Sequence record: MZ475897.1 | Reading direction: 5' to 3' (one strand) | Length of the DNA stretch: 64,000 nt | Part shown: positions 26,052 through 58,287 of the stretch, piece after piece | Position numbering within the stretch: the first letter of the stretch is position 1 | How the letters are laid out: every line of letters starts with the position of its first letter | Position numbers and translations under genes: made by a program | The notes under the pieces: model-generated | Seen by the model: only the letters and a program-made list of their open reading frames with translations | What the model was told of the DNA's origin: nothing | The model's database searches: none

Positions 26052-27815
26052 TTAGAATGCCTTACGTTCAACATTCGAATAATACGTTTCGTACGGCTCA
26101 GAATACAACTCAGGACCGCGCTGCGCACGCACAGTAACATAGCCTGTATGGCGATTCACTGCGGTGATTTCGATAGTAGGCTGTTTAGGCTTAATCGTGC
26201 CGTAGATAGGCGCGTTCATCGTTGGTGGGTCTGTCTGAATCTTGTTTACAGATTGCAGTGCAGCACCAGACAGCGTAGGGAACTTAAAGCGCAATTCAGC
26301 ACGCGTGCGCCCTGTAGCGATCTTGATACTACCCGCAGGCAGTTCAACGCCGCTCTGTTTCAAGTAAGCTGCGATGCGACGACCGATACCCGCCAATTGG
26401 TTCTTAGCGACAGGGTCCATCAGACCATCGAAACTAATAGCTGATTGCGGTTGATTCACTGACAGATGCATACCAGTGTTGAAGTAGCCTTCTGCGAGGA
26501 AGCGATACAACTGACGAACAATCTCAGGAGTGTTCTGTGCGATCACAGGTGTCAACAACTCAGGTGGGTTGGTCTTCATTGGGTCGCGGTATTCAACCTG
26601 ACCTTGCGAGTAACCCATGCTGATATGCTTAACACGAGGATAAGCAGACTGCAATGAACCAGTAGAGCGAATCAGGATAGAGCCAGACTTCGCTTGATCA
26701 TACAGTTCATCGCTGGTGGTTGTTGAGAACAGGAAGTAGTCGGTAGGCACAGCCATACGACCGATAGCTTCGATTGCTTTCGTCTGTACTTCTTTGATCG
26801 TCGAGCCGAACACTACACGACTGCGATTAGGCTGAGCGGTAGACACAGCAAAGAATGCACCGTACACCACCTTCTGGTCTTTGACGATAGGCGAAGCAGA
26901 CTTAACCTTTTGACCGCCTGGCAGTGGAGGTAGCTTAACGCCCACCAGCTTGCCTTTAGTGATTGCTTTGTTAGCAACAACAGGCTTCAAGGAAGACAGC
27001 AGCTTGTTCAACTCAGACCCGTCAAGAATCTTCTCCAGCGGAACAACGAGGTTCTGCGGCAGATAGTGTTTCTTGCGCAACGTATAGATAACGGTGTCTT
27101 TCTTGATCTGTAACGGAGTAGCCATGTTACGACCAGCTTGACCAACAGGCTGGAACGTATTCGCTTTGTCCTGACCAACAGAGCCGAACTCTTTGTCAAA
27201 CACAGACTGACCGATGATGTTCGCTGCACGCAGATGACCACGCACGTTGAACACAATCTTAGGTTCATCTTTCATGCGCAACTCATAGCGGTCACGCGTC
27301 AGATAGACCATACTGAACTTGTCGCCTTTCTCCAGCTCAAGGTCGTACTCATCGTTAGCGTCATCGATAACAACTTTCTTACCCTGATAGGTAGCGTACA
27401 CGCGAGCGGCAGCAGACTCCGAAGCAATCTTCAACGCTACGCCACAGTTAGACAGCGCGGTAGCATAGTTGGTTGCGTGGAACAGCGCGTCGTTCGATTC
27501 CGTGATAGCGACTTCTTTACCGCGTACGCCCAGCGCGAGGTGGATAGCGCTAGAGCTGGACATGAACACAGTGTGACCTGTATCTTCATGCTTACCAGCA
27601 AAGGACATACCACTAACACGCGACACAGACAGCGCATTCAGGTGCGGAGTAGTGAACGTATCACCCGCAGCAAAGTCAAAGATTTCACCTTGACGCCACG
27701 CGTAACCGATGTTGTTTGAACTCAAGCCAACAAACGCATCACCCACCTGTCGAATCGTAGTAGGGATAATGCTGAGATCGCGGACGATCTGATTTTGTTT
27801 CTGAATGATGGTCAT
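26052..27815 (-). CDS. Hypothetical basic protein with shared SH3-like module (putative head-internal protein)
   Basis: 587 aa; IASESAAA directly precedes the module at about 27200-27405. Confidence 0.65.
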   Translation of the reverse strand: MTIIQKQNQIVRDLSIIPTTIRQVGDAFVGLSSNNIGYAWRQGEIFDFAAGDTFTTPHLNALSVSRVSGMSFAGKHEDTGHTVFMSSSSAIHLALGVRGKEVAITESNDALFHATNYATALSNCGVALKIASESAAARVYATYQGKKVVIDDANDEYDLELEKGDKFSMVYLTRDRYELRMKDEPKIVFNVRGHLRAANIIGQSVFDKEFGSVGQDKANTFQPVGQAGRNMATPLQIKKDTVIYTLRKKHYLPQNLVVPLEKILDGSELNKLLSSLKPVVANKAITKGKLVGVKLPPLPGGQKVKSASPIVKDQKVVYGAFFAVSTAQPNRSRVVFGSTIKEVQTKAIEAIGRMAVPTDYFLFSTTTSDELYDQAKSGSILIRSTGSLQSAYPRVKHISMGYSQGQVEYRDPMKTNPPELLTPVIAQNTPEIVRQLYRFLAEGYFNTGMHLSVNQPQSAISFDGLMDPVAKNQLAGIGRRIAAYLKQSGVELPAGSIKIATGRTRAELRFKFPTLSGAALQSVNKIQTDPPTMNAPIYGTIKPKQPTIEITAVNRHTGYVTVRAQRGPELYSEPYETYYSNVERKAF

Positions 27816-27823
27816 ATTGATCC

Positions 27824-28258
27824 CTAATACGAAACAAGGCGGAAGGCATTCTTCTTGAGAAGATTCAAATTGCCTAACATGAGACTGTAGGCCATTGTGC
27901 CGTGCTCTTTAATAAGCTCGTCAGGCACAAGTGAACCGAAATAAATTGAGCGGTCTGGACGTGAGTTAATCTCAATGCCACTAGACTTCATTGCATTCGG
28001 TACGATGAAGCACCAAGGCTCTGCAACGTACTTACCTTTCACATACTGAACTCTATAGCCAACGGCAACGCGCTGGCCTTTCGGCGGGCTGTATGAAAAG
28101 ACATCCGTCTGCAATTCGAGGGCTTTCGATACGGAGAAAAGCGCCATAGTCAGAAAGCGTTGCTCGAATTGTGGAATGAATGCGTTGTCTTCGCATATCT
28201 TTTTCAGTACAGCCTCTTGCCGTGCTCGTGGGAACGAAGCGAAGAGGCTCAGGTTCAT
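27824..28258 (-). CDS. Hypothetical protein
   Basis: 144-aa ORF with ATGA coupling to tmk. Confidence 0.6.
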   Translation of the reverse strand: MNLSLFASFPRARQEAVLKKICEDNAFIPQFEQRFLTMALFSVSKALELQTDVFSYSPPKGQRVAVGYRVQYVKGKYVAEPWCFIVPNAMKSSGIEINSRPDRSIYFGSLVPDELIKEHGTMAYSLMLGNLNLLKKNAFRLVSY

Positions 28259-28869: not shown

Positions 28870-28878
28870 AGGGATTCC

Positions 28879-30312: not shown

Positions 30313-30342
30313 GGACCGTCTCCTTATTCGATAGTCTAAACT

Positions 30343-30350
30343 AAATTAGC
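30343..30350 (-). promoter_or_regulatory. GCTAATTT motif, candidate phage late promoter
   Basis: Intergenic, 30 nt upstream of ATG 30312. Confidence 0.55.
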
Positions 30351-30351
30351 G

Positions 30352-31343: not shown

Positions 31344-31353
31344 TGTCTTTCCT

Positions 31354-34037: not shown

Positions 34038-34040
34038 ATT

Positions 34041-39966: not shown

Positions 39967-40482
39967 TCAACTAAATTCAGGGATTTGGGCATCAAGCTGC
40001 ATTTGCACTGACCATACACCACGGCCGCCTGTGCCGTTAAGTTGTATGCCTTGCCCACCCACTGGCCAACAGTTACGAAGCTGCATAGCGGCAACCATTT
40101 TTCCTTGGTTGTCGTACAGTTCAATGAACATATTCTTTTTATAAGCTGACGGTAAACGCATACCGCCTGTGTACGGATTCTGAATCAGGTTCTGCCACGC
40201 TGTGAAATACTTCATTACAGCAAGACGTTGGTCGATACCGAACATCAGATTGAATCCGTCAATGCTGGAACCATGTGGCCAGTTGATTGCTACAGAAGCC
40301 ACTTCTTTTGATTTAGACTGAAAGACAGAGAACGGCAAATCGACTTCTTCACACGCAAAAGGACTGAGTGACACACCGCCCATTGTAGGAAACTCACGGA
40401 TGCGCCACTTGTCCAGCATGAAGGGATCGTCTAAGCCAGGTGCAGATGTGTCTTGCAGGTCAGCAAGCGTCGGCAGCGGCAT
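39967..40482 (-). CDS. Tail tube protein paralogue (gp19-like)
   Basis: WQNLI...Y...IELYD...L.NCWP pattern. Confidence 0.75.
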   Translation of the reverse strand: MPLPTLADLQDTSAPGLDDPFMLDKWRIREFPTMGGVSLSPFACEEVDLPFSVFQSKSKEVASVAINWPHGSSIDGFNLMFGIDQRLAVMKYFTAWQNLIQNPYTGGMRLPSAYKKNMFIELYDNQGKMVAAMQLRNCWPVGGQGIQLNGTGGRGVWSVQMQLDAQIPEFS

Positions 40483-40484
40483 GA

Positions 40485-41162
40485 TCAGTCCTCTACAATA
40501 ATAAGCACAGGTCTAACAGCATCATCGAACTTGATGAACGCAGCGCCAACAAGATAGCCACCCTTCTCTACTTGTTTCACGACGGCCTTTTCAAGATCTG
40601 TTTCCCACTTATCGCGCTGTGCGGGTTTGTAAGAAGCAAACGTCTCAGAAGCATCGTAGTAGTTATAGGTACCACCAGTAGGCATTGGGATACGTGCAAG
40701 GAACTCTAAGCGACTACAGTTCTTGAACGGGGTCTTGCGCAGCTCTTGCGTCAGCTTGGTGTTCTCTGATTTAGAGCCAGGCACAGCGGTGAATACTTTC
40801 TTAGGCTGAGGCTCACGAGGAGCAGCAGGCATCTTCTCACGCGCTGGCGTATTCTTGTCGCTGGCTTTCTTAACACGAATACCAGAAACAGTCCCTGTGA
40901 ATGGACGACTGCGACCAAGCAACGAACGTGCGGCCGTAGCGTCAACAACAAACACAACAGACGGGTCATCACGGTGCAGCACATAGAACTTGTTACGTGC
41001 AGCGGCCTTGATACCGAATACGTCTTTGTCCTCAATATCCGCTTCGTGTTCTTTGTTCTCGATACTGACCTTGCGCTTACCTTCAAAGCGATACCAGTCG
41101 CAGTCATTGATAGACACGATAGGTGTTTTGCGTGAAGCACTCTCGCTCAGAAAAATAAGCAT
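40485..41162 (-). CDS. Protein with LSESAS N-terminus and shared SH3-like module
   Basis: 225 aa; module at about 40900-41100; Pro/Lys linker. Confidence 0.65.
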   Translation of the reverse strand: MLIFLSESASRKTPIVSINDCDWYRFEGKRKVSIENKEHEADIEDKDVFGIKAAARNKFYVLHRDDPSVVFVVDATAARSLLGRSRPFTGTVSGIRVKKASDKNTPAREKMPAAPREPQPKKVFTAVPGSKSENTKLTQELRKTPFKNCSRLEFLARIPMPTGGTYNYYDASETFASYKPAQRDKWETDLEKAVVKQVEKGGYLVGAAFIKFDDAVRPVLIIVED

Positions 41163-41182
41163 GGTATCTCCAGGAAACGAGA

Positions 41183-41205
41183 AAGGGCCAAAACATCTGG
41201 CCCTT
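41183..41205 (-). terminator. Rho-independent terminator
   Basis: AAGGGCCA/TGGCCCTT stem followed by TCTCGTTT on the minus strand, after the tube gene. Confidence 0.6.
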
Positions 41206-41210
41206 AGTTA

Positions 41211-41723: not shown

Positions 41724-41733
41724 CTAAAGCTCC

Positions 41734-43419
41734 TTAGATTGCGCCAGACTGGATGAGTTGCAGCGCGTACTGGATATCGCCAACAGGTGGCACGATAGCA
41801 GTTACGTGAATGCGTTTAGTGTAGCGAGTCGGGTCAAGGAAAATATCGATGATCAGATCGCCACGCGCTTCGTCTTCTGCGGTGTTGTTGGTATAGTCAC
41901 AAGTAACTGCATACCAACGCAGGCCACGACCGGTCTTAATCGGTTCGAGGATTGCTTCCATCGCAGACTTCTGGCGCTGCTTCAGGATGTCATCGTTCGG
42001 CTCAAACACGGCGCTAAGGTTGTTAGCACGCGCAGATGCATGAAGCATCGCAAGCAGACGACGTACACCGATATCCTGAAGAGGAGACTTCGTGGTGTAA
42101 GTGGTATCAGCACCCCACATAAAGATGCCTTCACCTTCGAAGATAGCAATCGGGTTGATTTGGTTCTCAACCAGAATATCGCGATCACCGAGTTTGAAGC
42201 GATAGCGCACATCAGTAGCGAAGTCCAGTTTACCACGTTGCAGACCACCAGGAGCAAGCCATGAAGCAACTTGGTCAGCAGTCAACATGCAGTAAGCAGA
42301 ACACACAGACGCAGGCACATAGAAGTCGCGTGCGTTGTCGTTGTCGCGTGCTTTAACATCGGAGTTAGCCAGAGAAGACCAAGAACCCGTGATAGAGAAC
42401 TCAGCGTTCTGGTACTCTTTGTTGCCACGACGATACGCAACAGCGTTGTCACGACCTTGCAGCAGCACAGGGATACCGTGCGTTGCAATACAGTCCATGC
42501 GAGACTCGGCCAGGGTGTCAATCTTGTCGGCAATCACTGGATGCTCAAGACCACCAGAGCACAGGATGCCAGCTTGAATGTCTTCCCAATCGCGGTAGTT
42601 ATCCCACGCACTGACGACAGCGCTCAGACTCTGGTTCGCTATAGTTGCATCGGAGTGATCGACGTCAATAACAGCACCATCAGAACCGCCAGTAAACTGA
42701 CCGTTAACTGCATCAGGGTCCGTAGGATCAGCTGGCCCACCACCGATAGCATTGATGACCACATAGTTTGGGTCCTCCAGCAATTTGTAGTGATCGGTAT
42801 TCAGCTTGACACGGATATACTTGGACGCTGTGTTGATAACGTCTTCAATATAGAACTGATTGCCAGCTTCGTCTTTGTAGTAACGAGTAGTCACCACGTG
42901 GGTTTCGAGTGCTGTCAGGTAACCTGTCTGATACACTTTGATGATGGACTTAATGCCCAGTGCATCAGTCACGTCAGGCTCAAACGTGATGTACAGGTTG
43001 TTCGCCGCTGCATACTGAGACAAGGAATAAATCAGGCAAATGTCGCGGGTAGAGAAAGCGACTTGCTCTGGGTCATCTAATCCAGCATCACCCAGAGGGC
43101 GGCAGGTGGCGAAGTTGTTATAAGTTGTGAGGAACACACCTGCGTACTTGACAGAGAGAGCGACACGCGTAATGTTCAGCTTGGTCGCCTTCGTCATCAG
43201 AATCTTAGCGATCTGAACGTTGTTGGCATACTGACCGGTCGCTGGACCAAACAGGGCATCAATCTCGTCTTTGCTTGTCACAGTTGTGTTAACGCCAACA
43301 GGACCTCGTGGGAACGGCAGCACAAGAGTACACATGCCAAAAGTGACAAGTGACGCTTGGTTACTGCGGTCGTTCTCCATCGAGTAAACCCCAGGAGAGG
43401 GGTGATTCGGAATTAACAT
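41734..43419 (-). CDS. Tail sheath protein
   Basis: SPGVYSMENDRS start; WLAPGG..RG; INPI...GIFMWG; VRRLL; FEPND. Confidence 0.93.
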   Translation of the reverse strand: MLIPNHPSPGVYSMENDRSNQASLVTFGMCTLVLPFPRGPVGVNTTVTSKDEIDALFGPATGQYANNVQIAKILMTKATKLNITRVALSVKYAGVFLTTYNNFATCRPLGDAGLDDPEQVAFSTRDICLIYSLSQYAAANNLYITFEPDVTDALGIKSIIKVYQTGYLTALETHVVTTRYYKDEAGNQFYIEDVINTASKYIRVKLNTDHYKLLEDPNYVVINAIGGGPADPTDPDAVNGQFTGGSDGAVIDVDHSDATIANQSLSAVVSAWDNYRDWEDIQAGILCSGGLEHPVIADKIDTLAESRMDCIATHGIPVLLQGRDNAVAYRRGNKEYQNAEFSITGSWSSLANSDVKARDNDNARDFYVPASVCSAYCMLTADQVASWLAPGGLQRGKLDFATDVRYRFKLGDRDILVENQINPIAIFEGEGIFMWGADTTYTTKSPLQDIGVRRLLAMLHASARANNLSAVFEPNDDILKQRQKSAMEAILEPIKTGRGLRWYAVTCDYTNNTAEDEARGDLIIDIFLDPTRYTKRIHVTAIVPPVGDIQYALQLIQSGAI

Positions 43420-43461
43420 CGTGAATCTCCATAAGAGAGGGTATCGTGCAACGACTGGTGT

Positions 43462-43469
43462 AAATTAGC
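43462..43469 (-). promoter_or_regulatory. GCTAATTT motif, candidate phage late promoter
   Basis: Intergenic, 42 nt upstream of the sheath ATG. Confidence 0.55.
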
Positions 43470-43475
43470 GTGTTG

Positions 43476-43820
43476 TCAGTAGCAAATCACATTAACACGC
43501 TGATCAACGTCACTTACCAGAACACTTTTATCCATAGAGCCAGTAAGAGTAAACTGACCTTCGATAATCATCTGGCCTCCAGCGAATTGCAGAATAATAG
43601 GCTCAGCAGTATCAATATACAACAAGCCTACAACAGCAGGCAGTTGATAGCCCGTAGGCCCTACAATAACAGACTGCATCTGATACAGGCCATCAAGAGG
43701 AATACCTACTGCATGAGACTGACGCTTGAGCACTTCGTTTTGATTAGAAGTAACTGAACGCACACGGCTGTCAATGACAAGCGTACGGTCGAGCTTACGA
43801 TACTTTTGGCGCGTATACAT
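43476..43820 (-). CDS. Hypothetical (probably structural) protein
   Basis: 114 aa, TAATG-coupled, between the neck-like and sheath genes. Confidence 0.6.
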   Translation of the reverse strand: MYTRQKYRKLDRTLVIDSRVRSVTSNQNEVLKRQSHAVGIPLDGLYQMQSVIVGPTGYQLPAVVGLLYIDTAEPIILQFAGGQMIIEGQFTLTGSMDKSVLVSDVDQRVNVICY

Positions 43821-44491
43821 TACTCTTCCTCTTCGTCGTCAGGCAGCCCCAAGTCCATATCGATCTCAACGTTCTCGGAGACTTCACCGTAGTTGTTGAT
43901 TTTCGCTTGTTCGAGGTTAAAGCCAATCTTTGTTTTAATCGAGAACGGGATTTCAAGTTCAAAGCTGCCAGGCGTTGAGCCTTCATCAAGGTTATCGATA
44001 GCAGGCATTGGGATGCTGTCGCCGTCAAGCAACACACGCACAGTCCAGGCGGACGTAGGCATCTCAATCTTAAAGCTGAGCAGTTCCGTGATAGACGCAA
44101 TCAACAGTTGCTGCGTGAACAACAGCGCTTGGTCGATATCCATGAACTTGATGAAGAAGCTACCACTCATCGTTACAGGGAAGTAGTAGTTGGTGACGAC
44201 AATAGCGTTGGTGTCGTCTTTGCCCATCGCCCAGCCAGAACCAAAGCGAGCAACATTCTTAGGGTTGCCCAGCAGTTCGCGGTCGAATGCGATAGTGGAC
44301 AACTTGAACCAACCGTAAGGATATTCTGTGCTCTGATTGTTATTGGCACGAATACCTTGCTTAGGGTTGTTGTGTACAGACCACACAAAGCGCTTTAGAC
44401 CAAAGCCTCGGCATAGTTGTCGCTGTACTCCGAAAATCGAGGTGCGCAATGAAGTAGAGTTCTTCATCAGACCTGTAATGTTTACCGTCAT
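43820..44491 (-). CDS. Putative neck or tail-completion protein
   Basis: Position between the capsid and sheath genes; beta-rich. Confidence 0.5.
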   Translation of the reverse strand: MTVNITGLMKNSTSLRTSIFGVQRQLCRGFGLKRFVWSVHNNPKQGIRANNNQSTEYPYGWFKLSTIAFDRELLGNPKNVARFGSGWAMGKDDTNAIVVTNYYFPVTMSGSFFIKFMDIDQALLFTQQLLIASITELLSFKIEMPTSAWTVRVLLDGDSIPMPAIDNLDEGSTPGSFELEIPFSIKTKIGFNLEQAKINNYGEVSENVEIDMDLGLPDDEEEE

Positions 44492-44510
44492 TTGTGGTAC
44501 CCCAGATACG

Positions 44511-44537
44511 AAAAAGGGCAGCCGAAGCCACCCTTTT
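44511..44537 (-). terminator. Rho-independent terminator
   Basis: Minus strand AAAAGGGTGGC-TTCG-GCTGCCCTTTTT. Confidence 0.85.
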
Positions 44538-44556
44538 GGTTACCCGTAATCGGGTG

Positions 44557-44961
44557 CTAGTCGAGACGCAAGCGAATCAGCGAGCTAGACTCAGAATCAA
44601 CAACGGTAACGTCATCTTCATCGTCCAGGTCTTCTTCGTCTTCAACATCATCCGCAGAATCATCTTCGGAGGTATTGAGACTAACTACTTCATCGTCATA
44701 CAACGACTCGGCCCTTTCTTCCTCGGCAGTAAGCGCTAAGGCCGCAGACAGAGCAGTAACCGAATCAGCCATGCTTGACGCACTACTCACGGAGTTAACG
44801 AGGCAATTAGCTTCGAAGTTATCAGTGAGTTCGCATTCAAGGAACTGATCAGCATCTGGCGCAACCGCAGCTTGAGTTAACAAGCGAGCTACGTCCAACC
44901 ACTGTCCGTCACGCGCGGCGACAATTGCCAGTGCAGCTAAGGAACCAGATAAGGTCTTCAT
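44557..44961 (-). CDS. Small protein with acidic C-terminal tract
   Basis: 134 aa with SD; follows the major capsid gene. Confidence 0.65.
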   Translation of the reverse strand: MKTLSGSLAALAIVAARDGQWLDVARLLTQAAVAPDADQFLECELTDNFEANCLVNSVSSASSMADSVTALSAALALTAEEERAESLYDDEVVSLNTSEDDSADDVEDEEDLDDEDDVTVVDSESSSLIRLRLD

Positions 44962-44978
44962 GTTTGGTCCTCAGTGAA

Positions 44979-45000
44979 GAGGGTAGCTTATGCCACCCTC
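44979..45000 (-). terminator. Hairpin after the major capsid gene (partial terminator)
   Basis: Minus strand GAGGGTGGC-ATAA-GCTACCCTC-TTC. Confidence 0.55.
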
Positions 45001-45016
45001 AGATTGCACAACAATT

Positions 45017-46117
45017 TTATCCACGAACCGCTTTTGCGACTGAACGCACGTTCGCCAGAGTGAAGGAGAAGGTGCTTGACAGCAACCAGCCGCGGTCAGT
45101 GTTACCCTGGTTAGCGCCAGAGGTAGGAGTAGACTGCGTACCGCCACGAGTGGTGTACACTGCATGGTAGTCCTGGTCAGCCAGAACATACAGCTCGCCC
45201 TGTTTCAGAACGATGTGCTCTGGAGCACGCATACCATCGGTAACCAGTTCCATACCCAGCAGGGTACCCAGACGACCGGTGATCAGCAAATCATACTTAG
45301 ACACTGGGTCCAGAGCAGAAGAGAACTGATCGTTACCGATAATGTCGTTCCAGTAGTCCCACGCCATCACGGCGGTAGAGGTCGGCAGCGGCCATGAAGC
45401 AACGCTGTTTTTCAGGGTAGACAGCAGACGCGGAGTCAGGTCGCCGTGAACGTAGGTGATTGGGTTAGCGATACCAACAGCTTCGTCACACGCTTGTTTC
45501 CACAGACGGTCTTCTGCAACCATGATAGAAGACAGGCCATCTTGCTGCGCACGGTCCAGCAGGTCGCCGTTGATCTGGTCCAGATCCATTTTGCTTACGC
45601 GGATGTTGGATTTCAGTTCGAACTCAGCCGGCTGGTAGGTACGGCCGCGGAACTGGCGGTAACCGAAATCGGTAGGACCAGTTGCGATGATTGCTTCTGC
45701 CTGGTGAATTTTCAGTTCGATACGAGCAATGTCGCCCTGACGAACGGTAGCACCCTTACAGACTTTACGCAGCAGACCAGCACGCTCAGCACGGTCTTCG
45801 ATAGATGCAACGATAGAAGCACCCAGCGAGTCCCACTTAGCGCCAGAGGTATCAGCAGCAGCTTCGGCAAACAGTTCAATCTTCTCAGCTTCTGACAGAC
45901 CGTTAGAAGCGTTAGACTGTGAATGAACCAGCTCACCATTTTGGAACGCGTTAGCCAGACGGCTGATCTGAGAGATCAGGTCTTTCTGGCTTGATGCGTT
46001 AATCTCACCAGTGCTTTGGCTCAGAGCTAATTCATTGCTCTTGCCGAAACGCAGGTCTTCAATCGGGGCGCCATTACGCAGAGTTACTTTCGCGCCGCGC
46101 ATTAAGGAATTAGTCAT
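45017..46117 (-). CDS. Major capsid protein (HK97 fold)
   Basis: 366 aa, strongly biased codons, GGAG SD; EDRLWKQA, GRLGTLLGMELVTD; follows scaffold and decoration genes. Confidence 0.85.
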   Translation of the reverse strand: MTNSLMRGAKVTLRNGAPIEDLRFGKSNELALSQSTGEINASSQKDLISQISRLANAFQNGELVHSQSNASNGLSEAEKIELFAEAAADTSGAKWDSLGASIVASIEDRAERAGLLRKVCKGATVRQGDIARIELKIHQAEAIIATGPTDFGYRQFRGRTYQPAEFELKSNIRVSKMDLDQINGDLLDRAQQDGLSSIMVAEDRLWKQACDEAVGIANPITYVHGDLTPRLLSTLKNSVASWPLPTSTAVMAWDYWNDIIGNDQFSSALDPVSKYDLLITGRLGTLLGMELVTDGMRAPEHIVLKQGELYVLADQDYHAVYTTRGGTQSTPTSGANQGNTDRGWLLSSTFSFTLANVRSVAKAVRG

Positions 46118-46180
46118 TGCTTTGCTCCTGAGATTTTAATCTCGTAGTTTCAGTTTCTAACAGTTACGGTGCGCGACGAA

Positions 46181-46888
46181 TTAGGCGCCGTAAGAGGAAG
46201 ACATTTCGATGATCAGGTAACCTTTATCAGAGGTCGGCGAGTGCTTGATGATGCAGCCGGTCAGCTCAGTGCCGGTACCGCCGATAGTCAGCATACCGTT
46301 CGGGCCCAGGGTAGGATGCAGCACATTGTCAGCAGACCAGTCAACAGACGGGTCGAACATTGACGTTGCGATGTTACCCAGCTTGATGTAGCCGATACGG
46401 CCAACAACGTTTGACGCCAGACCACCGATAGGAGCATCAGCAGTATAAGAACGCGCTTCGGTAACGGTCAGCTCGTATGCGTACTGAACGTACACAGTTT
46501 TGCCAACGTCATCAGCGTGGAAGTACAGGTCAGCGCCATCAACACCAACGGTACCTTTAGCAGACGCTTCGGTGTCTGCTTCCTGGTCAGCTTTTTTGCC
46601 GTCGATTTTGACGAACAGCTTACCAGCATCAGGTACGCGAGAAGCGGTGAACTTTTTGGTAGCGTCGATGGTGAAGGTTTCAACGCGGTTCATGTGCGCC
46701 GGCGGCATGTTACGAGCCAGAGCGAAACCAGCGAACACTTCGTTAGCAGCACCGGTAGACAGACGCAGGAATGATTGACCGTTTTCACGGGCCCATACCA
46801 GCGCAACGCCTTCTTCGTGGATTACTTCGCCCGGCAGCAGGTCAGCTTCCTGGGTCTGTACAATGTCAGTAGCATTCTGATACAACAT
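46181..46888 (-). CDS. Capsid decoration or cement protein
   Basis: Between scaffold and capsid genes with the same codon bias; ATG 46888 has a GGAG SD. Confidence 0.6.
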   Translation of the reverse strand: MLYQNATDIVQTQEADLLPGEVIHEEGVALVWARENGQSFLRLSTGAANEVFAGFALARNMPPAHMNRVETFTIDATKKFTASRVPDAGKLFVKIDGKKADQEADTEASAKGTVGVDGADLYFHADDVGKTVYVQYAYELTVTEARSYTADAPIGGLASNVVGRIGYIKLGNIATSMFDPSVDWSADNVLHPTLGPNGMLTIGGTGTELTGCIIKHSPTSDKGYLIIEMSSSYGA

Positions 46889-46938
46889 AATTGGAATCTC
46901 CAATAAGAGAGTAAAGTTTAACTAGCGTAAGGTCGCTC

Positions 46939-49029
46939 TTATGAGCAGCGCAGACGGGCCAGTTTATCTTCGAACGAGTCAGTGGAAGCTGAACTCTGTG
47001 ATTGAATAGGTGCACTATCTTCGTCACCCAGAAGCTGCGCTGCAACGCTTGGTTGCTGCGGCTTAACAGGTGCGGTGACCTGCTGTTGAACTACAGGCTG
47101 AGCCTGCTGCACGGTACCGGCTGCGGCTTCGATTGACTGTGCAACTTCGTTCTGTGCAGTTTCAGACATAGACATAAGAGTCTGTGCTTTTGCCAGAGAA
47201 GTTGTCAGGAAATCTTTTCCATGCGCGATAAACGCGTTTTGAATCAGCGCGTTCGGGTCTTTGATGCCTGCGGCAGACAGAGAGCGAACGAGAGAATCAA
47301 CTATCGGGTTACGCACTTCACCCCAGTAGTTTTTGGTGATACCCAGCTGAGCAGAAGACAGGGCAGCAATCAAACGTTCCTGATGGGAAGCAACAGTGTC
47401 GTTGATGGTAGACGATACGCTGGTAGTGGCTTCGTTGATGCGAGCATCAGATTCAGCAACCAGCAACTTGTCTACAGGCATTTCGATTTGATACGGCATA
47501 AAGCCATACGCTTCGACTGTACCTACAACACCGCTTTGAACCAGGCTGTGTGAAACGGCACGGATGAAATTATCAGTTGCGAAAGATTTACGCGCAACTT
47601 CTTCACCAACAACGTTAGACACAGAGTTGAACGTGGCGCGAGCAACTGGCTGGCCGTCGTAGTACATGTGTACCGATTCGACTTTACCGCCGTTAGAACG
47701 GCTGAGGCTTACCAGGGTCGGGTCCAGTTCGCCGTACTGAGCTTGTACGGTAGACAGGCTGTCGAAGGTGCGATTAACGACTTTAGATTCAGAATCGAAG
47801 TCTTCATCGTCGAGGTCGAGATCATCTTCTTCCAGATCTTCGTCCTCGTCGAGGTCTTCGTCCTCGTCGAGGTCTTCGTCTTCATCAGCGCCAGACTCAG
47901 AATCGAAATCTTCGTCTTCGTCTTCGTCGTCGAGGTCCAGATCGTCTTCATCCAGACCTTCGTCGTCGTCGCCTGCACCAGATTCGGAGTCGAAGTCTTC
48001 GTCATCTTCGAGGTCTTCCTCGTCTTCGTCGTCCAGATCATCTTCATCCAGATCTTCGTTGTCGAGGTCATCCTCTTCGTCTTCCTCTTCCTCTTCGTCT
48101 TCGTCGAAGTCATCTTCATCGAAGTCGTCTTCATCTTCATCACCATCAGATGATTCAGAATCAAAGTCGTCGTCAGAATCTTCGTCTTCGTCGTCGAGGT
48201 CCAGATCGTCTTCGTCCAGGATATCAATGTCGCTGTCGCTATCATCGTCACCGGAGTTAGATTCAATCGGCTCGTCGACCAGCGCCGCAGAGCAATGCGC
48301 ACAGAAGACAGGCTCTTCATCGGAGCTTACAGTAAACGGCTGTTCGCATTTAGCGGAGCAGCTATAGATGTGAGCTTCGACGGTACCGTCAGCGGCAGCA
48401 GAAGACAGAGCAGTAACAGCTTCAGGAGCGTCCTGAGCATCACAGCTATCAACAGCCTGGCCGGTGTACGGGTCGAATTTGGCAACAGTAGCAGCGTTGA
48501 AGCTACCAGTGTTGGACAGCGCTGTGAACGTTTGAGCACCAGACAGGGCCTGCGCGAAGTTGCGTTGAGCTTCTTCGGCAGTCTCGCCAGTAGCGATCAG
48601 GCTCGCGTGTTCAATCTGTTCATCAGCGTTTGCGCTCTCAGCAAGGAACTGTGATACGCGTTCATCAGTGATTTCTGACAGGTCAGCAGAGCACGACGGG
48701 CAGCAGCCCTGAACGAGCGAAGCACTGTCGCTGATAACGTGGCTACCACAACCATCCAGACAGATAGTGTAATGCGCCTTCACGTCACCAGCAGAAGACT
48801 GAGACTGAACTTCGGCTTTCTCAACCAAATCAGGATGCTCATCCAGCAGTTCGTTACCGCCGGTTGGGTTGTAGAGGTCAGCGCCACTTTGCGAAGCAAA
48901 GCCCACACCGTCAGAAGAACCATAAATCATTAAGTTCTGGCCTAACGCAGTGCGACGAAAGTTCTCTACTGCCTGATTATGGTTTTTACCGACACACAGG
49001 ATACCCGCGAGTTGGGTAATCTTTGGCAT
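46939..49029 (-). CDS. Prohead scaffold or core protein with CxxC motifs and a ~155-aa Asp/Glu tract
   Basis: C..C pairs, acidic tract at about 47790-48260; GAGG SD supports ATG 49029. Confidence 0.65.
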   Translation of the reverse strand: MPKITQLAGILCVGKNHNQAVENFRRTALGQNLMIYGSSDGVGFASQSGADLYNPTGGNELLDEHPDLVEKAEVQSQSSAGDVKAHYTICLDGCGSHVISDSASLVQGCCPSCSADLSEITDERVSQFLAESANADEQIEHASLIATGETAEEAQRNFAQALSGAQTFTALSNTGSFNAATVAKFDPYTGQAVDSCDAQDAPEAVTALSSAAADGTVEAHIYSCSAKCEQPFTVSSDEEPVFCAHCSAALVDEPIESNSGDDDSDSDIDILDEDDLDLDDEDEDSDDDFDSESSDGDEDEDDFDEDDFDEDEEEEEDEEDDLDNEDLDEDDLDDEDEEDLEDDEDFDSESGAGDDDEGLDEDDLDLDDEDEDEDFDSESGADEDEDLDEDEDLDEDEDLEEDDLDLDDEDFDSESKVVNRTFDSLSTVQAQYGELDPTLVSLSRSNGGKVESVHMYYDGQPVARATFNSVSNVVGEEVARKSFATDNFIRAVSHSLVQSGVVGTVEAYGFMPYQIEMPVDKLLVAESDARINEATTSVSSTINDTVASHQERLIAALSSAQLGITKNYWGEVRNPIVDSLVRSLSAAGIKDPNALIQNAFIAHGKDFLTTSLAKAQTLMSMSETAQNEVAQSIEAAAGTVQQAQPVVQQQVTAPVKPQQPSVAAQLLGDEDSAPIQSQSSASTDSFEDKLARLRCS
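47790..48260 (-). repeat. Low-complexity acidic tract with (D/E)DLD(E/L) and FDSES repeats
   Basis: TCGTCTTC-rich DNA; four FDSES copies. Confidence 0.9.
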
Positions 49030-49074
49030 GGTTAAAACCCTCATAAGGAATGAAGTCGTTGAATCGACAGGTTG

Positions 49075-49082
49075 AAATTAAC
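49075..49082 (-). promoter_or_regulatory. GTTAATTT, one-mismatch variant of the late motif
   Basis: Intergenic, 45 nt upstream of the scaffold ATG. Confidence 0.4.
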
Positions 49083-49107
49083 GAAAGCAGAAAAATTTAA
49101 GGTATTT

Positions 49108-50238
49108 TTAGACTTTTCTGCTATCAATATCTGACTGAGGAATATAGCGATTTTCGAAGTATTTATTCACTACTTCGACACCGTTTAGCGTATAAACGTT
49201 ACGCAAACTATCTCCCCATACCATTAGTTCTGCCAGCGTTGCAAAGTGCTCCGTAGGCACGGATTTAATGGTCAGTGCATTGTTCGAATCAGGATGGATT
49301 CGCTTACCACGAATGGCCTGATCAAACTTCATACGGTCTACGTTACGTAGCATAGTATGGTCCACAAAGTGAGCCAATTCATGCGTCATAACGTGGGCCA
49401 TACTTTTGCTGTTATATCCACCCAGCAGACGAACAAGCTGTTGTGGACTAATAGCGATAACACCGTACATAAAGCCACGAATCATGTACGTGCTAATGTG
49501 AGAACCGCCTACATCGTTACCTTCCTGACCACCCAGAATAGAAACGTACAGACGCTTAAACGGCAGATTAACGTTCAGCCCTACAGCAGGCATTACGTTG
49601 TCCTGGATATCCTTTAGCACGAATGCTGGTGGGCTAACACCGTTGACTGAGATGTTTAGGCCAGGGATATTCAGTTCATCTGCACCACGCACTTCGAGAT
49701 GTACCGTACCACATTTAGGCAGTGGTTGAATTGCGTAGTTGTTTGGCGTACCACCAGCATAAGCAATATCAGAGTATTGCAGAGGCGTGAATTTACCGAA
49801 CTGAGGCCTGTCAAGTTCTCGACGTTGACGCGCTTCTTTGGACGCACGATCATCATCGATAGGAGTATCAACAGGAGGTTTTGGCTCGGGTTCAGGCGGT
49901 GGGATTGGCACTTCGGCAGCGGCAGGTTTTGGAACTTTCGCAGGCTTAGGCACTTTGACAGGCTTAGGCTTAGCAGACTTCTCCTCGTACGGAGTAAAGT
50001 CAAAGCCATCAAACAACGCATCAGGCTGAGCAGCAAAAGGTCTGCTATTAGCCAGTATCATTCCAGCGCTCTCCCCGCTGATTGCAACAGCTTGAGGGTA
50101 CTTAGGGTGAGCGATGTAATAGAGGTCATCGTTAACTTGATGGAGACCTACGACCTCGCGCGGCTGCATACGCACACCATTTGAAATCATAGTATCTCCA
50201 CCTAAGTAACGGACGAATTTGTAGTCCGTTATATCCAT
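49108..50238 (-). CDS. SH3-like module, Pro/Lys linker and HExxH zinc-metallopeptidase-like domain
   Basis: THELAHFVDH plus downstream EHFATLAE; start at ATG 50238 by TAATG coupling. Confidence 0.7.
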   Translation of the reverse strand: MDITDYKFVRYLGGDTMISNGVRMQPREVVGLHQVNDDLYYIAHPKYPQAVAISGESAGMILANSRPFAAQPDALFDGFDFTPYEEKSAKPKPVKVPKPAKVPKPAAAEVPIPPPEPEPKPPVDTPIDDDRASKEARQRRELDRPQFGKFTPLQYSDIAYAGGTPNNYAIQPLPKCGTVHLEVRGADELNIPGLNISVNGVSPPAFVLKDIQDNVMPAVGLNVNLPFKRLYVSILGGQEGNDVGGSHISTYMIRGFMYGVIAISPQQLVRLLGGYNSKSMAHVMTHELAHFVDHTMLRNVDRMKFDQAIRGKRIHPDSNNALTIKSVPTEHFATLAELMVWGDSLRNVYTLNGVEVVNKYFENRYIPQSDIDSRKV

Positions 50239-51017
50239 TAACGCATCCGCAGCAGGTGTTCTTTGTACGTTGCAGCACAAGCAAACGCTGGGTCATCCAC
50301 AGAGCTACACTCGAAACCAGTGAGACCCTTACAGTCACGATACACCAGGCGGCCTGTACGTGCATCCAAATACGTAGGCTTGTTGAACGCTGTGTGCGAA
50401 CAGAAGTTACGATTCTTCGGCGTTACCATCTGACCACAGATACTGCATTTATAAGCACGGTAGGTTGTGCCCTTGCTGTACGTGTTCAGTTCACCGCTGA
50501 GAATACGGTCACAACGTTCCTTACAGCGCGTGCGGTCAAACGCCAGCAACAGAGTCAGACGCGCATGATTGCCACGGAAGTTTTTCAGCTTAGACAGGTT
50601 TGAGTCAAAGATCATGCCCATTGCTTGGCGATAGTCTTTGTTGTTGTGCTCGATAAACGTCGGCTTACCAACGAACGTCTGATACGCAAGGCGTCCTTGA
50701 TCAGGGTTAAACGTCAACCATTCCTGTAAGCTGAATGCATCACCGTTAGTGTTCGGCAGCTCCGTGATGTTTACCACAACAGGCGCAATGATATAGTCAC
50801 GGATATCACGCGAGGTGTTGTACATCTCAGCAGCTTTAGGCAGCCACACGTTAACGTCGAGGTTAAAAGATCCCGTCTCAATACCGAAACGCGAAGCATC
50901 AACACGAATAGACTTAGCGTTTCGGCTAACATCTTCTTTGTGCATATCAATCGCGTTCAGTCCGACGAGGCCCATGTCTGAGGTATCAAACGACTCAGAC
51001 TTGATGAGCTGGGTCAT
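50238..51017 (-). CDS. Prohead maturation protease (herpes/HK97-type fold)
   Basis: PNTNGDAF, TFVGKPTFIEH, YSKG...CSICG...CSH, FECSSVDDPA; upstream of scaffold and capsid genes. Confidence 0.75.
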   Translation of the reverse strand: MTQLIKSESFDTSDMGLVGLNAIDMHKEDVSRNAKSIRVDASRFGIETGSFNLDVNVWLPKAAEMYNTSRDIRDYIIAPVVVNITELPNTNGDAFSLQEWLTFNPDQGRLAYQTFVGKPTFIEHNNKDYRQAMGMIFDSNLSKLKNFRGNHARLTLLLAFDRTRCKERCDRILSGELNTYSKGTTYRAYKCSICGQMVTPKNRNFCSHTAFNKPTYLDARTGRLVYRDCKGLTGFECSSVDDPAFACAATYKEHLLRMR

Positions 51018-51027
51018 CGTGTTCTCC

Positions 51028-51444: not shown

Positions 51445-51445
51445 G

Positions 51446-53414: not shown

Positions 53415-53425
53415 GAGTGCCTCTT

Positions 53426-54328: not shown

Positions 54329-54330
54329 AG

Positions 54331-56301
54331 TCACTCCAACTTATATTTACGTCGGAACTCTGCTAGACCCATGACAGGAATGCCTTTGTCCATGGCCTTC
54401 TGGAGTTTCGCAGAACCCGAGCCTGGGTCTTTGGCGATAAGAATGGTTGTATCTGCTTTCATGCTATCTGAGGCAGTACCACCAAGCTCAACGATACGCT
54501 GCATCAGTTCACGATCACGAATGCCTGTGAATGCAACGTTAACGCCTTTCAGCTTAGAACTCTTCACCTGAACACGTTTCGGTGCAACCAGCTTAACACC
54601 GATTTCATTTGCAAGCTGATACGCAGAAACACACGCAAGAGCAATATCAGGCGATTTTGTTTTGATGCCGTGAATATCCGAGATAGCTTTAGCGAGCGCC
54701 AGAGGATTCTGTTTGCGCACTAGCTTGTCAAGGTCAGGCACGCTATCGACCACTTTATCAAACGTAGTGTTAGCGCCACGCATGAAGTAAGGCGAGCACG
54801 CTTTGAGCCACGTATTGACAGCAACGCCTGAGCGTAATGCTTTGAGGTCTTTCGCAAGCTGAGCGCCACGCGAGTCACCAACCACTTCACGCAGCACACC
54901 GATAGTTGCAGCGAACAAACGGGCAGGTGTATCAATGCCAGACTCTACGAGCAGCTTCGACGTACTCGGTCCTGTGTTAGCAACGTCCAATCCTTTGAGG
55001 AATGAACTGAGCAGTCGAGTAGTGCCTACCTCAGTCTTGGTATTGATAACGAACTCAACGCCATTGACTTTGTAAGGCACATCAGGCAGCTTTGGCTTCT
55101 TCGCAGGCTTGAGAATCTCCATGATGTATGGGATTACCTTACCGCTACGAATCAGCTTGACCGTAGCACCTGGGCCAAGAGGCTTCTTAGCATGAGGCGC
55201 AGTCGCTTTGCCTTTAGGCTTGAGGTAGCCGTGCTCAACATAGAATCCATTGTGACCATTAGCACGCTGCACAGTGACGCCACCAGTCATCAACGTTGGT
55301 GGGAAGATAACAACAGGCTGCAAGATACCGTACTTGGTTTCTTGATAGATAACATCCTCTACCTTAACGATCACTGTGTCAGCTTCTGCATTCATCTTAA
55401 ACTTGAATGCGTGCTTTGGATTGGATGCAGTCGCTTTAGGGCTGGGTACATCTTCCGTGAGTACAACACCATCCAGCTCGTAGATAGCTTTAGACAGACG
55501 GCGCTCCAAGAACGCGATCAACTCATCTTCTGAATTGAAGCGCTTTGGTGGCGTATGCCTAACGACTTCGAATCCCCAGCGCTCTAGCAGGGCGAACTGC
55601 TTAGACTGTTTGAGCGTAGCACCGTCACCGCCGATGATAGAGAAGCACACCATGCGGACGTACTTGAACTCGGACGCTGTTTCAAAGTTACGCACAAGTC
55701 CAGACGCAGCGTTACGCGCAGCCTTGAAGCGACCACCAGCAGACTCATGCATCTTAGCCATGAATGTCTTTTGAGGAATGAGTGCCTCGAAGCGCAACAC
55801 CGTCTGACCTCTGACTGGAATCTTTTTAGGGATTTTCATCGCAGGGATATGATGGGATACGTCTTTACCGTGAGTAGCATCACCACGGGTATAAGCCTTT
55901 ACAGGCACACCGTCTTGATACACAATCTCAAGGCTCAAGCCATCGAGCTTGTCGGTTGCAACGTAGTCCACATCTTTCGACAGTGCTTTGGCAATCTGCT
56001 TCGAGCCTGCCTGAAACTGATTGAGACTTGCCATAGGTACAGGCAGCTTAACATCAGCATCATCACGCTGACCAATCTTACGAGCCAGCTTCGACTTAGG
56101 CCATTTAGCGTCGATGTAGTTACGGATTGAATCGTACACTGCATCGCTCACCAGACCTTCATCATCCGTATGATATGCGTTGTCCAGAGCGGTTATTAAG
56201 TTACGCACTTGCGTCTGGTTCAAGGTGTCCAAGACCTTTTGAGGGTTCTTGGACAGTTGCTTGAGACTAACAGAGGCAGAAATAGAAAGCCTTACTTTCA
56301 T
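54331..56301 (-). CDS. ligA: NAD+-dependent DNA ligase
   Basis: Domain Ia (AYH...VSDAVYD), KLDG, TRGD, ARNAASG, LDGVV, AFKFK, OB fold, C-terminal BRCT. Confidence 0.92.
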   Translation of the reverse strand: MKVRLSISASVSLKQLSKNPQKVLDTLNQTQVRNLITALDNAYHTDDEGLVSDAVYDSIRNYIDAKWPKSKLARKIGQRDDADVKLPVPMASLNQFQAGSKQIAKALSKDVDYVATDKLDGLSLEIVYQDGVPVKAYTRGDATHGKDVSHHIPAMKIPKKIPVRGQTVLRFEALIPQKTFMAKMHESAGGRFKAARNAASGLVRNFETASEFKYVRMVCFSIIGGDGATLKQSKQFALLERWGFEVVRHTPPKRFNSEDELIAFLERRLSKAIYELDGVVLTEDVPSPKATASNPKHAFKFKMNAEADTVIVKVEDVIYQETKYGILQPVVIFPPTLMTGGVTVQRANGHNGFYVEHGYLKPKGKATAPHAKKPLGPGATVKLIRSGKVIPYIMEILKPAKKPKLPDVPYKVNGVEFVINTKTEVGTTRLLSSFLKGLDVANTGPSTSKLLVESGIDTPARLFAATIGVLREVVGDSRGAQLAKDLKALRSGVAVNTWLKACSPYFMRGANTTFDKVVDSVPDLDKLVRKQNPLALAKAISDIHGIKTKSPDIALACVSAYQLANEIGVKLVAPKRVQVKSSKLKGVNVAFTGIRDRELMQRIVELGGTASDSMKADTTILIAKDPGSGSAKLQKAMDKGIPVMGLAEFRRKYKLE

Positions 56302-56340
56302 GCTTTTCTCCGATCGACATTAACACTCTTGTTTACAGTG

Positions 56341-58287
56341 TTATGATGCGATAGGGTCCTTGTTGACCTCGTAATCTTCCGCCATGTCGTACACGCGATT
56401 GAACAGCTTAGGCGCCATATCTTTCACATGCTCGGCATAGTCAAACAGGTTCTGTTTACGCGCACGATTGACACGCACCTGACGTACTTCGTCTGGGCTA
56501 TTCGTAATGTCGTACAGCGTATACACAACGATGTTATCGGAGGAGTTATGAGTGCTTACCTTGAGGACTACCCAATCGCGTTGCAGTTTAGCATCAGCCT
56601 TGAAGCGGAGGACGTCACCTTCTTCGGCTTCATCTGCACGCGCATCAGGAGTAGACTTGTTAGTTGCGGCAATCTTCTTCGCAGTCTCGGCAGCTTCTTT
56701 CTCTGCCTCAGCCACATCAGAATCTTGGTCTTCATCCGCTTCTGTTTCGTCTACGGCGTCAGAGGTATCGTCATCGGAGTCGTCGTCTTCTTCGTCGTCA
56801 TCTCCAGACGTATCTTCCTCGTCATCTCCTCCGTCGTCGGCATCATCGGGGTCCACATCGGAGTCGTCATCTGAATCGTCGGAGCTATCATCCCCATCCT
56901 CATCATCAGACTCTGAATCGCTATCGTCAGCATCTTCTTCTGCATCTGGATCGTCCTCTTCCGTTTCGTCGTCTGGGTCAACGTCACCGCCTTCAGGGTC
57001 ATCCTCTTCCAGCTCGGAGTCGTCGTCGAGGCTATCCTCTTCTGAGTCGTCTGGCTCATCATCCTTGGTTGAGTTCTTAGCAGAGCCGCCTTTCTTGCGT
57101 ACCTTAGACTTAGGAGCAACTTCCTCTTCGTCATCATCTGGTTCATCAATGTCAGACAGGTCAAGCTCGGAATCGACTTCGTTGTCTGCGCTATCATCAC
57201 CGCCGAACATAGAACTAACGGTGTCCTCCAGGCTGAATACATCACCTGCAAACGGGCTACGTTGAAGAATGTCTTCAAGGCGTTGCTCATCTAGGTCCTG
57301 CTCAAGGTCCAGATGTTCTTCGATAGCATCCTCGAGGTTTTCATGCTCAATGACTTTAGGCAGACGACGACGATCATTCAGGCCAGGGTCATCAGAGTAG
57401 ATGGTACGCTGTGGTCCTGTAGGCGCTTCAATCTCACCGTCACGCACTTTGCGTCTGAGGTCACGCATCTCTGCGCTACGCTCACGCGCTTTCTTGCGTG
57501 CTTCCTGTGCGAGTTCCTTGCGCTGTTGTTTACGCTCAAGGGAAGATGCCTCACGACCTAAACGTTCAGCTTCCTCAAGTTCACGGCCTTCGCGATGGCG
57601 AGCGCGGCGAACCATACGACGATACTGTTTGATAGTATCAACATCAACACTACCAACAGGCCAGTCATTAAGAGGCAGAATGTTTGTGTCATGCACAATC
57701 AGATCGTACTGAGCATCATCAACTTTCAGGAACAGGCCTTCTGTGTTGATAACGATACCGCCTTTACCTTGACGCAAGAAACGCACGCCAATCATATCGT
57801 TGCGGTACATCTTATAAATACCCTTGGTAGTCTTCACAGGATATTCATTGCCGGGCACCATGCGCCATTGATAGTTGGCAAAGTCAACGCCGTACACAGC
57901 TTCTGACTTAACCGATTTCGGCATAAAGCGAGGAGCATCAAACAGGGTGCGATTGATCTTACGCTCAAGGCTCTTAGCGCCAGCAACGCGTGCAGTAGTA
58001 CCAGCCTCACGTTTAACCACAGCTGGTGGCTTACGCAACTTAGAGCTACGTTCAATGAGGAACAGACCTGTCGTTTTGTCGAGAGGGAAATCGACGTGCG
58101 GCATGTCTGGGAAAATCAGTGTATAACGACCACCATTCCTGAGTGGCAGAATACCAAAAGTGTCGCCATTACGAATCATACGTTTGTGTGATCGCTGCGT
58201 CACCTCTCGCCCACGTGAACCAGTAAACTGCATCCACGCGTACTTCGATACGGCATCTTCATATGATGCGGATTCGGAGAGTACCAT
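56341..58287 (-). CDS. Protein with LSESAS N-terminus, two SH3-like modules, charged coiled coil and long acidic tract
   Basis: 648 aa; acidic tract at about 56690-57210. Confidence 0.7.
   Translation of the reverse strand: MVLSESASYEDAVSKYAWMQFTGSRGREVTQRSHKRMIRNGDTFGILPLRNGGRYTLIFPDMPHVDFPLDKTTGLFLIERSSKLRKPPAVVKREAGTTARVAGAKSLERKINRTLFDAPRFMPKSVKSEAVYGVDFANYQWRMVPGNEYPVKTTKGIYKMYRNDMIGVRFLRQGKGGIVINTEGLFLKVDDAQYDLIVHDTNILPLNDWPVGSVDVDTIKQYRRMVRRARHREGRELEEAERLGREASSLERKQQRKELAQEARKKARERSAEMRDLRRKVRDGEIEAPTGPQRTIYSDDPGLNDRRRLPKVIEHENLEDAIEEHLDLEQDLDEQRLEDILQRSPFAGDVFSLEDTVSSMFGGDDSADNEVDSELDLSDIDEPDDDEEEVAPKSKVRKKGGSAKNSTKDDEPDDSEEDSLDDDSELEEDDPEGGDVDPDDETEEDDPDAEEDADDSDSESDDEDGDDSSDDSDDDSDVDPDDADDGGDDEEDTSGDDDEEDDDSDDDTSDAVDETEADEDQDSDVAEAEKEAAETAKKIAATNKSTPDARADEAEEGDVLRFKADAKLQRDWVVLKVSTHNSSDNIVVYTLYDITNSPDEVRQVRVNRARKQNLFDYAEHVKDMAPKLFNRVYDMAEDYEVNKDPIAS
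56690..57210 (-). repeat. Low-complexity Asp/Glu/Ser tract
   Basis: About 170 codons dominated by GAC/GAT/GAA. Confidence 0.9.

Follow-up and report, generated by a model that had tools for sequence, protein, structure and literature searches.

The internal proteins IPI-III and Alt of phage T4 carry a capsid targeting sequence (CTS), which the gp21 prohead protease cleaves off at L/I-x-E. In the jumbo phages phiKZ and SPN3US, head and inner-body proteins are processed at S/A/G-x-E. These systems are compared here with a set of four proteins of the Erwinia jumbo phage pEa_SNUABM_21 (MZ475897.1, 265 kb; genus Snuvirus), all encoded in a 64,000-nucleotide part of its genome that is called the window in the following. 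All four contain a module that matches the Pfam domain KMPT-N (PF20294), and in three of them the short motif S-x-S-A stands just ahead of this module.

As in the case of the T4 CTS, a short N-terminal leader ending in a conserved small motif is found on otherwise unrelated proteins of a phage that possesses a head maturation protease. In contrast to the CTS, the motif is S-x-S-A without a conserved glutamate, the leader may have as few as 3-5 residues, and it is followed by a folded 65-residue domain that would stay on the mature protein; moreover, packaging is a proposal in the present case. The SESA leader does not end in L/I-x-E, and a T4-type L-x-E cleavage site within SESA was rejected because its glutamate is not conserved among the orthologs. 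With phiKZ and SPN3US, the phage shares its classification as a jumbo phage, paralogous families of head proteins, and extensive maturation proteolysis. It differs from them in belonging to another clade, with a 366-aa (amino acid) HK97-type major head protein, in its motif, and in the lack of any sequence relation.

The reading preferred here, to which we give a probability of roughly 0.4 to 0.45, is that KMPT-N has a docking and packaging function. It would act as a common adaptor: while the particle is being assembled, cargo parts unrelated to one another would be brought to a single shared partner and thereby be built into the virion. In pEa_SNUABM_21 the cargo would comprise a zincin peptidase, a coiled-coil/acidic protein as well as two unknown domains, and in phage PaBG an SprT-like peptidase or a KTSC domain. 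S-x-S-A would be a separate linear signal, most likely the place where the head maturation protease, the candidate enzyme for this step, trims these proteins. The adaptor role is suggested because the module is always N-terminal, is joined by a linker to different cargo, and is borne by 3-5 genes per genome across distant genera.

Four KMPT-N paralogues and the clade that carries them

The four proteins and their modules, all encoded on the minus strand, are as follows.

26052..27815, minus strand: 587-aa protein (PHROG 32352) with a ~130-aa N-terminal domain, S-x-S-A, KMPT-N and a ~380-aa part
27213..27401, minus strand: KMPT-N copy 1, residues 139-201 of the 587-aa protein (Pfam E 7.9e-20, 71.2 bits)
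40485..41162, minus strand: 225-aa protein with a 5-residue leader, S-x-S-A, KMPT-N and a ~130-aa C-terminal part
40908..41102, minus strand: KMPT-N copy 2, residues 21-85 of the 225-aa protein (Pfam E 6e-19)
49108..50238, minus strand: 376-aa protein, KMPT-N plus zincin metallopeptidase, with the start ATG at 50238 (390-aa open reading frame, 49108-50280)
50044..50223, minus strand: KMPT-N copy 3, residues 20-79 of the 390-aa frame (Pfam E 2.6e-20)
56341..58287, minus strand: 648-aa protein with S-x-S-A, KMPT-N, a second SH3-like domain, a basic coiled-coil-like stretch, an acidic tract and a ~100-aa C-terminal domain
58045..58242, minus strand: KMPT-N copy 4, residues 16-81 of the 648-aa protein (Pfam E 3.1e-17)

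An earlier note, made from the sequence without database searches, had described the module as unrecognised. Its coordinates and reading frames are correct, and the module is real. Its novelty is not upheld, because PF20294 matches all four proteins at the places given, with E-values of 3e-17 to 3e-20 and 63-73 bits. With 71.2, 68.4, 72.8 and 62.9 bits, the 587-, 225-, 376- and 648-aa proteins lie well above the gathering cut-off of 28.9 bits, and by sequence the module is almost certainly KMPT-N. Orthologs in sister phages already bear this name in UniProt/BFVD. KMPT-N stands for KTSC and Metallopeptidase N-terminal fusion domain, and the Pfam/InterPro entry gives no function for it. No paper mentioning KMPT-N was found in the literature, NCBIfam gave no match for any of the four proteins, no solved structure was found by sequence search with them, and the ESM Atlas yielded no usable match for the module or for the C-terminal part of the 587-aa protein.

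The paralogy that the earlier note had claimed stood up to comparisons of the families with one another. Ortholog sets were drawn from the protein collection for three families and from phage records for the fourth. When the ortholog profiles were aligned between families with hhalign, probabilities of 97.9% (E 3e-13; the 225-aa copy against the module of the 648-aa protein family), 96.3% (E 1.5e-9) and 74% (E 2.8e-5) were obtained. In hidden Markov models (HMMs) built with one family left out, the omitted family was always the next-best match among the 66 open reading frames (ORFs) of the window, with E-values of 3e-9, 2e-16, 4.5e-3 and 2.2e-3. On these sequence comparisons, the four confirmed copies are true paralogues.

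The arrangement for which the family was named, an N-terminal module fused to a metallopeptidase or to KTSC, is found in the window in the HExxH zincin, and the cargo of the other members is neither of the two. The name itself is explained by PaBG, where PaBG_00089 fuses KMPT-N to an SprT-like peptidase and PaBG_00107 fuses it to KTSC. The fusion to differing C-terminal parts, as described in the earlier note, is confirmed for the HExxH peptidase and the acidic tract, and the module always lies N-terminal to them.

By Megablast, positions 40000-50500 of the window are 100% identical to pEa_SNUABM_21. Its closest relatives are in the genus Snuvirus, followed at ~80% DNA identity by Alexandravirus and Dickeya phage AD1. 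The clade with four KMPT-N paralogues comprises Snuvirus, Alexandravirus, Yoloswagvirus, Sasquatchvirus, Salmondvirus, Yersinia phage fHe-Yen9-02, NCTB, PaBG and Lu11. All four protein families were found in every phage record of this clade (57-59 records), with orthologs of the 587-aa protein in 57 of them. The four genes are conserved core genes and not fast-evolving accessory genes, and their products are ancient paralogues whose genes keep fixed places within the virion-gene region throughout the clade.

Predicted fold and a diverged second domain

The KMPT-N domain itself is modelled by AlphaFold with a predicted local distance difference test score (pLDDT) of 85-93; the model of the zincin protein reaches a pLDDT of 84, and residues 1-215 of the 648-aa protein a mean of 79. 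In a structure search against the PDB, nearly all top matches were SH3, SH3b, FeoA, DtxR-SH3 or Tudor folds, and the best PDB rows of Foldseek for the model of the 648-aa protein were tandem-SH3 proteins. The Z-scores of the SH3-like matches are only 3.3-5.9, and Foldseek gave no PDB match at E < 1e-3. KMPT-N is predicted to form an SH3-like small barrel followed by a helix, in agreement with the SH3-like character proposed in the earlier note. Its predicted fold and strand order agree with those of solved SH3-like barrels, namely the SH3b of NlpC/P60 (2evr), FeoA, the DtxR C-terminal domain, eukaryotic SH3, and the TraI translocation-signal domain (4l0j), with VIA Z-scores of 4-5.9 and root-mean-square deviations (rmsd) of 2.1-3.5 A over 55-71 residues. 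Copy 3, for instance, matches an SH3 domain with a VIA Z of 5.3 and an rmsd of 2.1 over 60 aligned residues. Unlike these barrels, KMPT-N has an extra C-terminal helix, and there is no sequence similarity; Z-scores this low establish neither common descent nor shared function.

SH3-like barrels often bind nucleic acids. KMPT-N may likewise be a small barrel that binds nucleic acids, in the manner of Sso7d, the integrase C-terminal domain, KOW or Tudor, that tethers DNA- or RNA-acting enzymes to the phage or host genome and that is unrelated to packaging. The partners in PaBG fit this explanation, as the SprT-like peptidase belongs to a family of DNA-dependent proteases and KTSC is predicted to bind RNA (Iyer et al. 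2021, PMC7824862). So does the position of the 648-aa gene, which adjoins the DNA ligase gene in both pEa_SNUABM_21 and PaBG. However, the module is basic in the 648-aa family only, with a mean net charge of +5.8 compared with +0.4, -1.2 and -0.5 in the other three families. Since three of the four families are thus neutral or acidic, a shared electrostatic binding of nucleic acids is argued against. The conserved positions of the domain lie mostly in the hydrophobic core, and nucleic-acid binding would leave both the upstream S-x-S-A and the placement among virion genes unexplained. It is the main rival of the adaptor role, although we consider it unlikely; roles in the regulation of peptidases or at the cell wall are less likely again.

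The structural matches also bear on the cell-wall role, in which KMPT-N would be an SH3b-type wall-binding domain of virion-associated lytic or penetration proteins. Among the best matches are SH3b domains of NlpC/P60 peptidases and phage endolysins (2evr with Z 5.9, 4krt, 1xov). These matches are weak, however, and those to eukaryotic SH3, FeoA and Tudor are equally good. An HExxH zincin of this type is not known as a cell-wall hydrolase, the acidic and KTSC partners make no sense at the cell wall, and none of the proteins has a signal peptide, so that this role appears very improbable.

The earlier note had counted five copies of the module. Four are supported by Pfam, HMMs and hhalign; the fifth is weaker yet plausible:

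57667..57909, minus strand: proposed fifth copy, the second SH3-like domain, residues 127-207 of the 648-aa protein (from pooled-profile hhalign and the model)

Pfam gave no match to residues 127-207 even at E 10, and none of the single-family profile comparisons with this domain was significant. The pooled profile of the four families (105 modules) aligned with it over 69 columns, almost end to end, with P 8e-4 and a probability of 24.5%. In the AlphaFold model, both halves of residues 1-215 show the same order of a short helix, six strands, a helix and a strand, and residues 13-86 and 127-207 each match SH3b, FeoA, DtxR-SH3, eukaryotic SH3 and Tudor with Z 3.3-5.9, values at which, by the tool's own caution, no more than a shared arrangement may be indicated. 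The second domain is kept as far as PaBG and NCTB. It is rather likely to be a diverged KMPT-N duplicate.

S-x-S-A and the link to the virion

The motif lies just ahead of KMPT-N in three of the four proteins, where it had already been seen as SESA in the earlier note.

27411..27422, minus strand: S-x-S-A (SESA) of the 587-aa protein, residues 132-135, located internally and preceded by a variable linker; six genera have S-(E/M/I)-S-A
41136..41147, minus strand: S-x-S-A of the 225-aa protein, residues 6-9; S, S and A invariant in 29/29 family members
58267..58278, minus strand: S-x-S-A of the 648-aa protein, residues 4-7; invariant in 42/42 family members; residues 1-8 with pLDDT < 50

Across the 648-aa and 225-aa families, S, S and A are unchanged in all 71 of 71 orthologs while their neighbours vary; the position x is occupied by E, V, T, L, I or A, and in the 587-aa family also by M. 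The orthologs in NCTB read LSISA, ISLSA and LSESA. The leader is probably disordered, as it is modelled at low confidence (pLDDT < 50). Since, in addition, the distance from the motif to the domain varies (4, 11 or 14 residues), S-x-S-A is a linear motif and not part of the fold.

These properties also speak to the possibility that S-x-S-A is a conserved structural cap or interaction strand without any role in cleavage or targeting, and that its N-terminal enrichment, described below, is a post hoc impression. In favour of this explanation, the motif is low in information, S-x-S is common, the pattern was picked after inspection, and the helicase introduced below has K instead of A in two genera. 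A structural cap is hard to reconcile with the varying spacing, with a leader that appears disordered, with a motif that one family has internally and the rest at the N-terminus, with its invariance amid varying neighbours, and with its presence on unrelated proteins. We regard it as improbable, and see about even chances that S-x-S-A is a processing or targeting site.

Beyond the KMPT-N proteins, the motif is found near other N-termini. Within the first 15 residues of the 352 ORFs of the nearly identical genome of pEa_SNUABM_7, S-x-S-A was observed 12 times against 3.1 expected (~4-fold, p 9e-5), and an extended form of it 6 times against 0.5 expected. Two proteins without KMPT-N are of particular concern here:

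pEa_SNUABM_7 148774-154608 and PaBG 148541-154450, both outside the window: genes of the SNF2-type helicase (~1950 aa)
56275..56286, minus strand: LSISAS tag of the NAD-dependent DNA ligase (gene 54331-56301)

In five of six genera, S-x-S-A stands at the N-terminus of the helicase, and the PaBG ortholog, gp202, begins with it as well. This protein was identified by matrix-assisted laser desorption/ionisation (MALDI) mass spectrometry as band 1 of the PaBG virion proteome (PMC7412058, Table 1). Virion proteins of PaBG are proteolytically processed, and its major capsid protein loses about 20% (PMC7412058). For the Erwinia and Dickeya members, no virion proteome was found in the literature. The ligase tag opens an N-terminal extension of ~20 residues (LS-x-SAS); it is present in Snuvirus and Dickeya phage JA29 and absent from Yoloswag, fHe-Yen9-02, NCTB and PaBG.

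A role of S-x-S-A as a tag is suggested because S, S and A are invariant, because the motif is enriched at N-termini, and because the SNF2 helicase bears it and gp202 occurs in PaBG virions. The gp202 finding is the sole experimental link between the tag and the virion, and it is an indirect one. For the KMPT-N proteins, the link to the virion is drawn from the gene order around the zincin gene:

50238..51017, minus strand: head maturation protease (PHROG 18299, E 1e-125), next to the KMPT-N zincin gene

The stop codon of the protease gene overlaps the zincin ATG (TAATG, window 50236-50240), which suggests translational coupling of the two. After the zincin gene come those for a 701-aa ATPase, for a 240-aa 'virion structural protein' and for the major head protein. 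The ATPase is a PHROG 'ATPase' without a Pfam family; it holds the position of the PaBG large terminase and is not identified as a terminase here. The KTSC member of PaBG is flanked by portal and terminase. The overlap with the protease gene, the nearby head genes and the position of the PaBG KTSC member are the grounds for supposing that the KMPT-N proteins may belong to the virion. That they are head-internal or ejected and that the module is their docking or targeting domain, as the earlier note had proposed, is likewise an inference.

Several points weigh against the packaging role of KMPT-N and S-x-S-A. The zincin member has no S-x-S-A, and the 225-aa member is flanked by tail-tube genes and not located among head genes. 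PaBG's three KMPT-N proteins are absent from its 14 identified virion bands, which were Coomassie-visible bands only (PMC7412058). The p-values for S-x-S-A are optimistic because the pattern was chosen after inspection, and PaBG shows weak enrichment only (8 occurrences against 2.75 expected). The maturation protease matches no Pfam family, and the structural Z-scores of 4-6 fall in the range for which the tool warns of a mere common arrangement.

In its widest form, the proposal would make S-x-S-A and KMPT-N parts of an undescribed system that loads and processes virion cargo in jumbo phages of the PaBG/Lu11/Alexandra type. Enzymes would be committed to the capsid by an SH3-like docking domain together with a short tag that the maturation protease cuts, and would be delivered with the DNA; the set would include the zincin, the SprT-like peptidase, the 220-kDa SNF2 helicase and the acidic DNA-mimic-like protein, joined in some genera by the DNA ligase. 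This wider scheme is doubtful. If it applies, a little-studied clade of jumbo phages would mark proteins for the particle by S-x-S-A plus an SH3-like adaptor, and KMPT-N would receive its first function. Injected proteins (helicase, peptidases and sometimes ligase) would become predictable from sequence, and a handle for putting foreign proteins into capsids, like the T4 targeting sequence, would be at hand. The KMPT-N domain is already known from Pfam and UniProt, and it is the S-x-S-A tag hypothesis that is new. The PF20294 entry is also silent on the S-x-S-A leader, on the set of four paralogues, and on the second, diverged copy that the 648-aa protein probably has.

Three further observations concern the motif. 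Outside the window, pEa_SNUABM_7 encodes two adjacent paralogues of 373 and 333 aa (166356-167477 and 167488-168489) that match no family and have V-S-E-S-A at residue 13. In NCTB (LT598654.1, near 194800, minus strand), the ortholog of the 648-aa protein begins with MLKLNL..SISA, a leader that recalls the Firmicute N-terminal extension of ribosomal protein L27 removed by the Prp protease. Prp-type (L27) cleavage was rejected as an explanation of S-x-S-A, with no Peptidase_Prp in the nearest genome, pEa_SNUABM_7.

Fusion partners and neighbouring genes

One of the partners of KMPT-N is the zincin. ATG 50238 is the true start of this protein, giving 376 aa, and its PHROG alignment begins at residue 15 of the 390-aa frame. 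In the RefSeq record of pEa_SNUABM_7, the ortholog is annotated from a start ~20 codons too far downstream, which truncates the domain. Two parts of the gene are of interest:

49228..49383, minus strand: zincin catalytic core, with HELAH at 49369-49383 and a conserved downstream Glu-containing helix at 49228-49251
49429..49623, minus strand: sub-threshold second KMPT-N match, just ahead of HExxH (Pfam 26.4 bits, E 8e-6)

H286, E287 and H290 are invariant in the 28 sequences of the family, which also share a conserved EHFATLAELMVWG block. The protein has the HExxH helix, the downstream E-containing helix and the sheet-helix N-subdomain of a zincin, and its modelled fold (residues 178-376) matches lugdulysin, YbeY, selecase, PPEP (Pro-Pro endopeptidases), the lethal-factor catalytic domain and SprT/Wss1 with Z 3.9-5.6. 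No specific MEROPS family could be assigned to it.

The stretch ahead of HExxH was considered as a fifth copy of KMPT-N and rejected: the model puts it inside the zincin fold, and the families' own profiles align with it over 13 columns only. It is probably, as modelled, the helix-plus-sheet N-subdomain of the zincin and so not a separate copy. The corresponding region of Yoloswag (KY448244.1, 103584-103769) scores 56.5 bits with PF20294 compared with 26.4 bits here. This score may reflect either a relation between KMPT-N and the zincin N-subdomain or a contaminated PF20294 model.

These scores are relevant to another explanation, according to which KMPT-N serves the peptidases as a pro-domain or exosite, an appendage that regulates them or selects their substrates, the other paralogues are substrates or decoys, and S-x-S-A is cut by the KMPT-N zincin and not by the head protease. 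The family is named for its metallopeptidase fusion, PF20294 matches the sheet sub-domain ahead of HExxH as just described, the zincin gene is coupled to that of the maturation protease, and the zincin is the only untagged member, all of which would agree with such a function. On the other hand, three of the four paralogues have no peptidase, a low-confidence stretch of ~60 residues parts the module from the catalytic domain in the model, and the small overlap of the profiles with the pre-HExxH region also tells against it. A peptidase appendage is, in our estimate, quite improbable.

The acidic tract of the 648-aa protein is the other partner confirmed from the earlier note:

56653-57387, minus strand: acidic tract, ~245 aa, 113 D+E

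For the C-terminal parts of the 587-aa and 225-aa proteins, no family match was found in Pfam or NCBIfam, nor, for the 587-aa part, in the ESM Atlas.

The tail genes that surround the 225-aa gene are two tail-tube paralogues (PHROG 45), with a sheath gene upstream:

39967-40482, minus strand: tail-tube paralogue
41211-41723, minus strand: tail-tube paralogue
41734-43419, minus strand: sheath gene

In the head region, two further genes display S-x-S-like sequences:

45017-46117, minus strand: major head protein
44557-44961, minus strand: 134-aa protein, just downstream of the head protein gene

In the major head protein, an L-S-x-S-T-G-E-I-N-A block is conserved around residue 33, and four of six genera show S-x-S at about residue 70, roughly where the ~20% maturation loss of PaBG would fall. 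The 134-aa protein begins with an N-terminal L-S-G-S-L-A, contains more S-x-S clusters and has a tail that is strongly acidic; we regard it as a candidate for a scaffold or core protein.

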